DNA of 64,000 nucleotides from Macrostomum lignano (taxonomy: Eukaryota), in assembly GCA_002269645.1 (NCBI GenBank), contig NIVC01001676.1, positions 186,001-250,000 on the forward strand. The letters run 5' to 3'. Within the stretch, counting starts at the first letter, position 1; the number at the start of each line of letters is the position of its first letter. This document shows, one piece after another, positions 45,861-52,998 of the stretch. The notes beneath the pieces are model-generated. The model was not told where the DNA came from, made no database searches, and saw only the letters and a program-made list of their open reading frames with translations. A program made the position numbers and the translations under genes.

Positions 45861-48800
45861 ATGCTTGAGTTCAGCGAAGTTTGCATTTTACTTTTAGCAC
45901 TGACAGCAGCTCCATCCAAGTGTTCAGGTAAGACCGAGTGTGTTCACAATTTTGTCTTGTTCGCCAAGTTCCTTATAATCCAGAACCTCTGCTTTACCTC
46001 ATCTTTTATTCCCTACGTGTTCAGCTGAAAGCTCAGATTTTGGCTGGATTTGCGAGGCCACCAAGGAGTTTTTTGTAGCCTCACAGCTCGATGACCTGCA
46101 GCTCAACAGCAGCGACAGCTCAGCCAGGGTGTGCCTTCACCGGACTGATTATCCCGACTCGGTGCTTCTTTACGAGTCTACTGACAAGGTGAGTTAAGCA
46201 AACTCGTAAGAAACTCGTTTTGGGTGTAGAGACAGCCAGACAGGGTGGCATCAATATCATCGCGATCTAGTAGTCGCTTGGGGTCTGTAATCTATCATCC
46301 CAGTCAGGGGCGTCGCCACCGGGGGGGGGGTTACATGTCCCCCCCCCAGTAAAAGCCACCCCCATTTTGTGACCCGATGTGAAAATCAATAATTTTGTTT
46401 CAGGGCGCCAAAATGAGTGCCTGCCTTTGGCGCCAAAGTGAGTGCCTGTGGCGCAAAATGAGTGCCTGTCTTTGGCGCCAAAGTGAGTGCCTGTGGCGCA
46501 AAAATGAGTGCCTGTCTGTGGCGGCAAAATGAGTGCCTGTCTTTGGCGGCAAAATGAGTCCCTGTCTTTGGCGCCAAAATGAGTGCCTGTGGCGCAAAAA
46601 TGAGTGCCTGTCTGTGGCGCCAAAATGAGTGCCTGTGGCGCCAAAATGAGTCCCTGTCTGTGGCGCCAAAGTGAGTCCCTGTCTTTGGCGCCAAAATGAG
46701 TGCCTGTGGCGCCAAAATGAGTCCCTGTCTGTGGCGCCAAAGTGAGTCCCTGTCTGTGGCGCCAAAATGAGTGCCTGTGGCGCCAAAATGAGTCCCTGTC
46801 TGTGGCGCCAAAATGAGTGCCTGTGGCGCCAAAATGAGTGCCTGTCTGTGGCGCCAAAATGAGTGCCTGTGGCGCCAAAATGAGTGCCTGTCTGTGGCGC
46901 CAAAATGAGTACCTGTGGCGCCAAAATGAGTGCCTGTGGCGCCAAAATGAGTCCCTGTCTGTGGCGCCAAAATGAGTGCCTGTGGCGCCAAAATGAGTGC
47001 CTGTCTGTGGTGCCAAAATTAGCGCTGAAAACACCGATTCGCAAAAGAATGAATTTGTAGGAATTTAGTCATGTACATGTAAAATTCTTGGCTTTGTCCC
47101 CCCCCCACCATAAAATCCTTGGCGACGCCCCTGATCCCAGTTGGTTTTGTCCAGAGCTAAGCGTCTGGTTGCATTCTGACCGCTGTACATCCGCGGTGTC
47201 AGTGTAGGCCTGTGCTCATTTGTGCTCAGGAAAAGCTGAATTGACACGAGAATTTGAGGCTTGGTCTAAGTGTGTAAGCGGCTTTGGGAGTGGAGTCCCA
47301 TTACTTTTGTACTAAGGATTATTTAACAGTGCATGCTTGATGTCTAAGTTGAATAAATGATTCATTTTCATCTTTTGCAGACTGAAGCGCAGAACGAGAG
47401 CCGCATTCTGGTATTTGAGCTGCCGGATCACTTGAAAAGCGGCTGTTCCAGCGACTTTTTCTGGCAGGTGAGCTGAACAGCGGAAAGCGAAACCAGAGTC
47501 ACCGGATCGGGCACCTGGGGGCACTTTTTAATCCTTCGTTTGCAGCGAAATCCACTAATAAAACAATAAACGAAAACTGAACTCTCCCCGACAGATTGAA
47601 AGACAACCGATTGATTCGACAATGGGACTGTGCGACAATTCGATACCGAATAAATGCTTTATAAAAGGTGAGTTTGATATTTTTTCTATCTATCTATCTG
47701 TCTATCTATCTATCTATCTATCTATCTATCTATCTATCTATCTATCTATCTATCTATCTATCTATCTATCTATCTATCTATCTATCTATCTATCTATCTA
47801 TCTATCTATCTATCTATCTATCTATCTATCCATCTATCTATCTATCTATCTATCTATCTATCTATCTATCTATCTATCTATCTATCTATCTATCTATCTA
47901 TCTATCTATCCATCTATCTATCTATCTATCTATCTATCTATCTATCTATCTATCTATCTATCTATCTATCTATCTATCTATCTATCTATCTATCTATCTA
48001 TCTATCTATCTATCTATCTATCTATCTATCTATCTATCTATCTATCTATCTATCTATCTATCTATCTATCTATCTATCTATCTATCTATCTATCTATCTA
48101 TCTATCTATCCATCTATCTATCTATCTATCTATCTATCTATCTATCTATCTATCTATCTATCTATCTATCTATCTATCCATCTATCTATCTATCTATCTA
48201 TCTATCTATCTATCTATCTATCTATCTATCTATCTATCTATCTATCTATCTATCTATCTATCTATCTATCTATCTATCTATCTATCTATCTATCTATCTA
48301 TCTATCTATCTATCTATCTATCTATCTATCTATCTATCTATCTATCTATCTATCTATCTATCTATCTATCTATCTATCTATCTATCTATCTATCTATCTA
48401 TCTATCTATCTATCTATCTATCTATCTATCTATCTATCTATCTATCTATCTATCTATCTATCTATCTATCTATCTATCTATCTATCTATCTATCTATCTA
48501 CCCCACAGTCGGGTGGCACAGCAACTGCCCAGCACCCATGTACTCAGGAAGCCAGCAGCTCAGCTGCTACAACCCTCCATCCGGATTTATCGAACTGTGC
48601 CAGCGGCGGTCGGAGCTCGGCAGCAATCGGAACTGGATGTCCTCAAATTCCAGCGCCGTCGCCGCAGACGAGGACTCTACGGGATTGCAGGTGTTCTCAG
48701 CCGTCGTGGCCTTTCAATTGTGGCTGCCGCTGCTGGTCGCCCTGGTCTGCGGCCTCCGCTACTGGCGCGCCAGAACCGTCCAGAGACGGCAGGGCAGCGG

Positions 48801-48903
48801 CCCCGCAGTTCCGATCGTCAATCCGCCGCCGGTCGAGCCCTGGGAGGCTGAGCGGGCGCTGCAGATGGACCCGGACACCTGGGAGAGGGTGGCCGTCGAG
48901 TGA
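45861..48903 (+). CDS. Unassigned type I membrane protein, paralog 1, 261 aa; exons 45861-45927, 46025-46188, 47381-47467, 47595-47667, 48509-48903
   Basis: Signal peptide MLEFSEVCILLLALTAAPSKCSA; introns GT-AG with phases 1,0,0,1; CDS 786 nt; 8 ectodomain Cys; TM LQVFSAVVAFQLWLPLLVALVCGL followed by RYWRAR. Confidence 0.85.
46305..47133. mobile_element. Non-autonomous hAT element (829 bp) with internal GGCGCCAAAATGAGTGCCTGT minisatellite
   Basis: 14-bp TIR CAGGGGCGTCGCCA / TGGCGACGCCCCTG; perfect 8-bp TSD ATCCCAGT (46297-46304, 47134-47141). Confidence 0.93.
47685..48500. repeat. (TATC)n microsatellite, about 204 units, filling intron 4 of paralog 1
   Basis: Read directly; a few CCAT variants and one CTGT. 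Confidence 0.98.
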
Positions 48904-52900: not shown

Positions 52901-52998
52901 ACCGCCTGACGGCCAGTGGCGACCATTTTAACTATCGCCGCGATCCGCGACTTTTGATGGCCAACCCTGACACCGGGGAGCTCATTGACAATTCTTAG
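49976..52998 (+). CDS. Unassigned type I membrane protein, paralog 2, 286 aa; exons 49976-50054, 50757-50926, 51727-51816, 51907-51988, 52559-52998
   Basis: Poly-Leu signal peptide; introns GT-AG with phases 1,0,0,1; CDS 861 nt; 8 Cys aligning with paralog 1; TM ATVGIGTALFIAVLLSAGVALIWAI. Confidence 0.85.
50172..50615. repeat. About 20-bp minisatellite (GGGAATTGCTGTGGCTCATG) in intron 1 of paralog 2
   Basis: Direct imperfect repeats. Confidence 0.92.
50958..51198. repeat. 28-bp minisatellite (TGTACTTTTCTGAGTGTACATATCCGGA) in intron 2 of paralog 2
   Basis: 28-bp period (51001, 51029). Confidence 0.93.
51203..51455 (+). mobile_element. tRNA-derived CORE-type SINE
   Basis: A box TAGTGGTTAGAGC; B box GGTTCGATTCC; then TGTGTCCTTGAGCAAGGCACTTAAC...CTGTAAAATGGG resembling the MIR CORE domain as I recall it; second copy at 9441-9676. 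Confidence 0.8.
52008..52530. repeat. 15-17-bp C-rich minisatellite (GAAATACCCCTTCCCC / GAAATACCCCATCCC) in intron 4 of paralog 2
   Basis: Direct repeats. Confidence 0.94.

Follow-up and report, generated by a model that had tools for sequence, protein, structure and literature searches.

Two adjacent five-exon genes

The window analyzed here is a 64-kb stretch of the Macrostomum lignano genome (assembly Mlig_3_7, GCA_002269645.1, scaffold NIVC01001676.1), in which positions 45861-52998 hold a tandem pair of genes for cysteine-rich, single-pass membrane proteins. The first base of this interval is the ATG of gene 1 and its last base closes the stop codon of gene 2. Rebuilt from the sequence, both genes lie on the + strand and consist of five exons each, with a coding sequence (CDS) of 786 nt and a product of 261 amino acids (aa) for gene 1, and a CDS of 861 nt and a product of 286 aa for gene 2. 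All eight introns are bounded by GT..AG, and their phases run 1,0,0,1 in each gene.

Exon 1 of gene 1 (45861..45927) carries the start codon and the putative signal peptide (MLEFSEVCILLLALTAAPSKCS...), and is followed by a phase-1 intron. The ectodomain begins in exon 2 (46025..46188), which encodes Cys1 (C32), Cys2 (C59) and the conserved sequon N50-S-S and precedes a phase-0 intron. Cys3 lies in exon 3 (47381..47467; RILVFELP...GC(99)SSDFFWQ), again followed by a phase-0 intron, and Cys4 and Cys5 lie in exon 4 (47595..47667; IERQ...C(119)DNSIPNKC(127)FIK), after which a phase-1 intron contains a (TCTA)204 microsatellite. Exon 5 (48509..48903) encodes Cys6-8 (C137, C150, C161), a Ser/Asn-rich stalk with N177, the transmembrane (TM) helix and a 48-aa Pro-rich tail, and ends with the stop codon.

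Gene 2 repeats this layout on the same strand. Its exon 1 (49976..50054) carries the start codon and a poly-Leu signal peptide and ends in a phase-1 intron; exon 2 (50757..50926) encodes Cys1 (C37), Cys2 (C62) and the sequons N51 and N55, with a phase-0 intron after it. Exon 3 (51727..51816; HLLVKFKIP...MC(106)RYEYKWK) supplies Cys3 before another phase-0 intron, and exon 4 (51907..51988; IEE...C(128)SDLIPFNEC(137)RVK) supplies Cys4 and Cys5 before a phase-1 intron that holds a minisatellite of 33 copies of a 16-bp unit. Exon 5 (52559..52998) encodes Cys6-8 (C147, C159, C173), a stalk rich in Thr, Ser and Ala, the TM helix, a 67-aa tail and the stop codon.

The public annotation of NIVC01001676.1 places two genes at window positions 45861-48903 (261 aa) and 49976-52998 (286 aa); their outer ends are identical to those of the models, each GenBank gene start being the same base as the start of our exon 1. 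An exact-sequence look-up identified the gene 1 product with GenBank PAA65185.1/PAA86455.1 (BOX15_Mlig016674g3/g1), labeled 'hypothetical protein', and the product is also 99% identical to the g2 entry PAA86542.1 (BOX15_Mlig016674g2); the UniRef entries for this protein group are A0A267EUG3 and A0A1I8JML6. For gene 2, the agreement with the annotated 286-aa product is one of gene ends and product length, not residue by residue. The pair is BOX15_Mlig016674g1/g3 together with its unnamed 286-aa downstream neighbor. No description of the paralogy with this neighbor, or of an eight-cysteine module, was found in the literature and records searched, the GenBank entries giving no domain, family or function.

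The GenBank annotation of M. lignano derives from a genome-guided RNA-seq transcriptome assembled with StringTie/TACO, TBONE and TransDecoder (PMC5730564). Because it is RNA-seq-derived and its gene ends match the models, support from spliced transcripts is largely in place. A first-pass annotation of this DNA had drawn both five-exon genes and their shared intron phases by eye, and its models proved exact at the GT-AG junctions and in the annotated ends and lengths; the RNA-seq confirmation of junctions that it had called for is largely provided, through a transcript-based annotation whose gene ends fall on the very same bases and whose gene 1 protein is identical. Its description of the proteins as unrecognized stands for their domain, which matches none of the Pfam families, but not for the genes, both of which are in GenBank from RNA-seq-based transcript models.

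Long micro- and minisatellites occupy nearly every intron and the intergenic spacer (46404-47019, 47685-48500, 49132-49447, 50176-50621, 50962-51201, 52002-52529 and 53154-53759). Intron 4 of gene 2 is open in the frame of exons 4 and 5, which yields a misleading 359-aa open reading frame (ORF) at 51919-52998. Within intron 2 of gene 2, the segment 51200-51440 has a tRNA-like start (…GGTTAGAGCGTCGGACTC…GGTTCGATTCCCG…) and may be a tRNA-derived short interspersed nuclear element; Rfam and ARAGORN gave no match to it, or anywhere else in the window.

Paralogy and shared protein architecture

The two products align with 28% identity over 141 aa (BLASTP, E=4e-8). The Smith-Waterman score of their ectodomains is 101, against 29.4 ± 5.0 in 2000 shuffles of the gene 2 ectodomain (z=14.3), and the local alignment pairs seven cysteines where no shuffle paired more than four. 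With the cysteines masked, z is still 4.3. In a MAFFT global alignment all eight ectodomain cysteines are invariant, the sequon after Cys1 is common to both proteins (N50-S-S of gene 1 with N55-S-T of gene 2), and the four introns fall in homologous columns, at the end of the signal peptide, at K77|T versus K83|S, at Q106|I versus K113|I and inside V131 versus I141. The stalks, TM helices and tails do not align. A profile built from the two ectodomains matched exactly the eight ectodomain exons in the six-frame translation of the window, and neither this search nor tblastn found a third paralog within the 64 kb. Adjacent on one strand, significantly similar and with introns that agree in position and phase, gene 1 and gene 2 are true tandemly duplicated paralogs with identical exon architecture. 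Every peptide pair that had been quoted in support of an exon-by-exon correspondence is present in the MAFFT alignment, and the claim that the eight cysteines persist at low overall identity is borne out.

The shared plan consists of a signal peptide on its own exon, an eight-cysteine module spread over exons 2-5, a Ser/Thr-rich stalk, a TM helix and a short tail. Cysteine spacing in gene 1 is C-x26-C-x39-C-x19-C-x7-C-x9-C-x12-C-x10-C, and that in gene 2 is similar, for a span of 130 aa (C32-C161) and 137 aa (C37-C173), respectively. Sequons occur at N50, N82 and N177 in gene 1 and at N51 and N55 in gene 2. Each protein has a single hydrophobic segment of about 23 aa that forms the TM helix, at aa 190-213 in gene 1 (48685-48756) and aa 197-219 in gene 2 (52726-52794), and hydropathy in a 19-residue window exceeds 1.6 in one peak per protein (189-215 and 191-224) in addition to the N-terminal hydrophobic run. 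All eight ectodomain cysteines and all sequons lie N-terminal of the helix in both proteins, and a Ser/Thr/Asn-rich stalk of about 25-30 aa leads from the cysteine module to it. The cytoplasmic tails, 48 aa in gene 1 and 67 aa in gene 2, contain no catalytic domain.

The poly-Leu run makes the signal peptide of gene 2 unambiguous, and in gene 1 cleavage after CSA(23) would leave exactly eight ectodomain cysteines. By topology both products belong to the class of type I single-pass membrane glycoproteins, with predicted cleavage and glycosylation and with sequons and cysteines outside the membrane. The type I topology proposed at first pass is thereby recovered in both proteins, from signal peptide (in gene 1, a predicted one) and sequons through a Cys-rich ectodomain of about 135 aa to one TM helix and unrelated short tails.

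Search for a known family or fold

No Pfam-A family matched either protein at E<=10 (hmmscan). The two-ectodomain profile, run against all PDB chain sequences, returned three matches with E = 0.3-0.7, to a forkhead domain and to bicarbonate exchanger/transporter chains, which we rejected as chance. When the complete gene 1 protein was compared with 1.84 billion representative sequences (phmmer), no homolog was found outside M. lignano, other Macrostomum genomes and transcriptomes not being searched directly, and word-indexed protein searches with gene 1 and with the two-ectodomain profile retrieved only the cluster of gene 1 itself. The sole non-self phmmer match, P0002 (E=1.8e-4), is to a bacterial protein of 1474 aa whose 'YQYNWTTSDGSG...TDEDQTN' repeats are SprB-like; it was rejected as compositional because the match is confined to the low-complexity stalk of gene 1, rich in Ser, Asn and Asp. 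The 15-billion-protein collection contains the gene 1 product, and neither the 286-aa product of gene 2 nor the 284-aa form encoded by a second genomic copy. Single-sequence AlphaFold2 modeling of the gene 1 ectodomain gave a mean predicted local distance difference test score (pLDDT) of 34.6 and a predicted TM-score of 0.23, too low for use.

Individual candidate families were likewise not found at the level of sequence. For the Ly6/uPAR (LU) domain, hmmscan of both proteins gave no match to PF00021 UPAR_LY6, Activin_recp or Toxin_TOLIP at E<=10, and the LU signature of 8-10 cysteines in about 70-90 aa with a CCxxxxCN end is absent, the cysteines spanning 130 and 137 aa with neither a CC doublet nor a CN that follows the final Cys. 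For the immunoglobulin (Ig) superfamily, there was no match to the Ig, V-set, I-set or C2-set families of Pfam, and the proteins have neither a Trp at 10-15 residues from C1 nor the Y-x-C that leads into C3; C1 and C3 are 67-69 aa apart, as an Ig domain would allow. For ZP-N, which has 4 conserved Cys in about 100 aa of a ZP module, no match at E<=10 was obtained to PF00100 or the ZP-N profile, and no zona pellucida protein was among the PDB profile matches. Finally, none of the mannose-6-phosphate receptor homology (MRH) families PF00878, PF02157, PF07915 and PF13015 was matched, nor was any MRH chain among the PDB matches at E<=10; the MRH domain is a flattened beta-barrel whose sugar-binding Gln, Arg, Glu and Tyr are conserved. 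Judged by sequence comparison, the module of about 135 aa matches no described family.

These results agree with the first-pass annotation in that the domain is not recognizable, as no Pfam family reached E<=10 and the PDB profile yielded chance matches; a Pfam match, which that annotation had named as one of the results that would speak against it, was not seen. It had also called the family lineage-specific. The lack of any relative outside M. lignano among the 1.84 billion representatives is consistent with a lineage-restricted family, and the force of this agreement is limited by the incompleteness of the collection.

The module might instead have diverged strongly from an extracellular fold already described, for example an Ig-like beta-sandwich with a small knot, an MRH domain, or a three-finger domain of the Ly6/uPAR or TGF-beta-receptor type, in which case the proteins would work like members of that family. 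We regard this as possible, if doubtful. In size and cysteine count it resembles an MRH repeat, which has 6-8 Cys in about 147 aa, and an MRH-type cargo or lectin receptor would suit the tail of paralog 2, whose YxxPhi and acidic dileucine-like motifs are those of sorting receptors; the C1-C3 distance is like that of the Ig intersheet disulfide. Strand-like alternation of hydrophobic residues is visible in RILVFEL/HLLVKFKI and CFIKVG/CRVKIG, and the low-confidence AlphaFold2 model places strands at SVLLYE and RILVFE. However, a model with a pLDDT of 34.6 puts no positive test behind the idea, and against it stand the empty Pfam result for both proteins, a PDB profile search that returned three chance matches (the forkhead and bicarbonate-transporter chains), and the lack of the LU CC and C-terminal CN as well as of the Ig Trp after Cys1 and Y-x-C before Cys3. 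That the module represents a genuinely new fold, extracellular and disulfide-bonded, which exists only in Macrostomum or the Macrostomorpha and is borne by a small duplicating family of surface receptors that serves lineage-specific recognition (for example of partner, sperm or egg in these hermaphrodites, or of microbes), is a reading we consider unlikely.

Genomic copies and evolutionary constraint

The tandem pair is found on three near-identical scaffolds, that of the window (NIVC01001676.1), NIVC01000275.1 (hereafter L001) and NIVC01000280.1 (L003). The public annotation calls genes on all three, and the three copies fit the hidden polyploidy reported for M. lignano (PMC10468722). Satellite array lengths vary between these copies.

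L003 is nearly the same as the window, with differences at about 0.05% of sites. The annotated products of gene 2 measure 286 aa in the window, 284 aa in L001 and 214 aa in L003, where gene 2 (L003:16145-16583) has lost 1 bp from a GGG run, equivalent to window position 52729 in exon 5, just before the TM helix. This deletion produces the annotated 214-aa product, which has neither TM helix nor tail, and represents either a real frameshifted or soluble allele or a homopolymer assembly error.

Divergence between the window and L001 is 0.85% in CDS (14/1641) and 1.12% in non-repetitive non-coding sequence (27/2407; Fisher p=0.43). The CDS, 1.64 kb in all, contains one indel, of 6 bp, in frame and in the stalk of gene 2; of the 11 indels in non-repetitive non-coding sequence, 9 are not multiples of 3. 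The ratio of nonsynonymous to synonymous polymorphism (pN/pS) between polyploid copies is 0.19 for gene 1 (5 differences) and 0.43 for gene 2 (9 differences), counts too small for statistics. For the fast evolution that the first-pass annotation proposed, the polyploid copies offer the one available comparison; they are too alike for a firm statement on rate, and pN/pS gives no sign of acceleration.

These values bear on the proposal that the pair encodes reproduction-related recognition proteins, exposed on gametes, sperm-receiving organs or gland cells and evolving fast under sexual selection, which would account for the lack of homologs elsewhere. The phmmer scan, in which no homolog appeared beyond M. 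lignano, and the retention of the cysteine scaffold in paralogs that are only 28% identical are both in keeping with it, as is the faster evolution and turnover reported for reproduction-related genes in Macrostomum (PMC7336406, PMC8662610, PMC10092323). Against it, the polyploid copies show pN/pS values under 1, and no expression data tying the genes to the gonads or the tail region were found; neither the full-text literature nor the supplements of M. lignano expression and evolution papers contained the identifier Mlig016674, with the caveat that large tables may have been cut short. On balance we find this proposal rather improbable.

Tail motifs

The tail of gene 2 contains VVYSAF at residues 235-240 (52840-52857) and, close to its C terminus, DTGELI (52969-52986) within ...NPDTGELIDNS. 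YSAF fits YxxPhi and DTGELI fits [DE]xxxL[LI], the classical sorting signals of clathrin adaptor protein (AP) complexes. The tail of gene 1 is Pro-rich (VNPPPVEPW) and has neither motif.

VVYSAF had been called similar to an immunoreceptor tyrosine-based inhibitory motif (ITIM), a label that does not hold: the consensus [S/I/V/L]xYxx[I/V/L] is not matched because Y+3 is Phe rather than Ile, Val or Leu, and the motif fits a generic YxxPhi sorting signal instead. That paralog 2 is an inhibitory immunoreceptor-type molecule recruiting SH2-domain phosphatases is very improbable. It does have one tyrosine motif, 18 residues past the TM helix and in a non-catalytic tail, but the defining position of the consensus is occupied by Phe, the tail has no second ITIM and no immunoreceptor tyrosine-based switch motif, and VVYSAF is equally a YxxPhi endocytic signal; paralog 1, moreover, offers no ITIM candidate, its sole tyrosine motif being YWRA at the membrane edge.

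Surroundings of the gene pair in the window

The neighboring genes encode a rhodopsin-type G protein-coupled receptor, a peptidase of the M2 family resembling angiotensin-converting enzyme (ACE), two PhyH dioxygenases, a long terminal repeat (LTR) retrotransposon and a tyrosine phosphatase, and give no functional hint. The ACE-like (Peptidase_M2) gene is represented at 5192-8844 and 17024-17413 on the - strand, an extent of more than 12 kb, and a run of about 220 Thr from a trinucleotide repeat, coding or intronic, lies in the frame of its last segment (ORF 5192-6202). A 485-aa ORF at 18228-19685 (-) has no Pfam match, and its N-terminal half consists of imperfectly repeated units of about 23 aa (…SQNPSVPHHRIPQFLITESLSSS…).

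The PhyH (phytanoyl-CoA dioxygenase) gene is present as two tandem copies at 20694-22510 and 25259-26592 (-). In L001 and L003 a PhyH gene precedes gene 1 by about 8-9 kb, whereas the nearest copy in the window lies about 19 kb upstream. Part of the extra window DNA (30-38 kb) consists of tandem repeats spaced about 3.2 kb from each other, in which the ORFs at 30985-31365 and 34177-34557 are identical. The LTR-retrotransposon pol region (38325-42403, +) encodes RVT_1, RNase H and an integrase zinc-binding domain in an interrupted frame; the same region is found at the equivalent position in L001 with 99.1% identity, compared with a BLAST identity of 94-96% for the flanks.

Interpretation of the pair

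The reading we favor, and hold to be probable, is that the pair encodes transcribed, taxon-restricted, tandemly duplicated type I membrane glycoproteins with a four-disulfide binding module and short tails bearing adaptor motifs. The eight cysteines would form four disulfides, so that the module would fold in the secretory pathway and face the cell exterior or an organelle lumen. It may be a binding or adhesion domain, probably beta-rich, presented on a mucin-like stalk. After the duplication the scaffold of the module appears to have been kept and the tails replaced, and we propose that the paralogs consequently couple to different cytoplasmic partners. As the tails have no catalytic domains, they would act through short linear motifs. 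YSAF and DTGELI suggest that paralog 2 most likely cycles between plasma membrane and endosomes via AP complexes; paralog 1, with no such motifs in its Pro-rich tail, is more likely to be a resident or static surface protein. Duplication with tail replacement would point to subfunctionalization in trafficking or signaling, with the binding scaffold retained. The surface receptor or recognition role suggested by the first-pass annotation is deduced from topology and stays at the level of a candidate function.

Several observations weigh against this reading. The signal peptide of gene 1 is a predicted one with an atypical, acidic n-region (MLEFSE). Motifs of the YxxPhi type would be expected by chance in roughly half of all tails of this length, on a rough estimate, and short tail motifs being so common, the trafficking inference is weak. 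The divergence of CDS is close to that of non-coding sequence, so the polyploid copies yield no measurable sign of purifying selection. A protein collection that does not include gene 2's own product weakens the claim of no homologs, even for M. lignano. No direct evidence was found on site of expression, localization, glycosylation, disulfides or ligand.

It is hardly credible that the models are transcribed noise or annotation artifacts with no functional protein, for which one could cite the bare 'hypothetical protein' label, the satellite-filled introns, the frameshifted L003 copy of gene 2 and the lack of measurable excess constraint on CDS between copies, given that paralogs at 28% identity still have open frames, a signal peptide, a TM helix, 8/8 cysteines and a sequon in common, with four introns that agree in position and phase, as would not be expected without selection, that the sole CDS indel is in frame, and that a transcript-based annotation matches the gene ends base for base.

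As it stands, the pair represents ordinary taxon-restricted genes in a genome rich in genes with no recognizable homologs, and no long-standing question depends on them. The genes themselves were already public; what the analysis adds is the paralogy of two annotated 'hypothetical proteins' and the signature of their domain. Should the module turn out to be an extracellular fold of a new kind, or a far-diverged branch of a receptor fold already described, the catalog of metazoan surface domains would grow by a small family, and Macrostomum, in which transgenesis and RNA interference are available, would gain a tractable pair for the study of how orphan receptors originate and diverge after tandem duplication.

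Comparison with known systems

Single-pass sorting and cargo receptors with disulfide-rich luminal domains, such as the cation-dependent mannose-6-phosphate receptor, follow the same overall plan. After the signal peptide comes an N-glycosylated, cysteine-containing ectodomain (about 135-160 aa), followed by one TM helix and then by some 50-70 aa of tail. The tail of paralog 2 is similar to theirs in combining YxxPhi with [DE]xxxL[LI], whereas paralog 1 has no such motifs. With the mannose-6-phosphate receptor the likeness is architectural only, as no sequence similarity to the MRH families of Pfam or to any PDB chain was detected.

The Ly6/uPAR surface proteins share with the pair a small Cys-rich ectodomain, with 8-10 cysteines, on the flatworm cell surface, and TM-anchored LU members in flatworms include schistosome Sm29. 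The LU domain measures 70-90 aa, with a CxxC-type start at its N terminus and CCxxxxCN at its C terminus. In the pair, by contrast, the eight cysteines are spread over 130-137 aa, with no CC or CN and no Pfam match.

Orphan genes of M. lignano offer a third comparison. The published tally for its 72,846 annotated genes (44,328 non-redundant) gives only 8006 human-homolog genes and 5819 Pfam domains (PMC5730564, Table 3). The pair resembles the orphans in having no outside homolog at the sensitivity of HMMER and no Pfam domain, but differs from other orphans of this species in forming a small family, with eight cysteines, conserved introns and paralogs, rather than a singleton.

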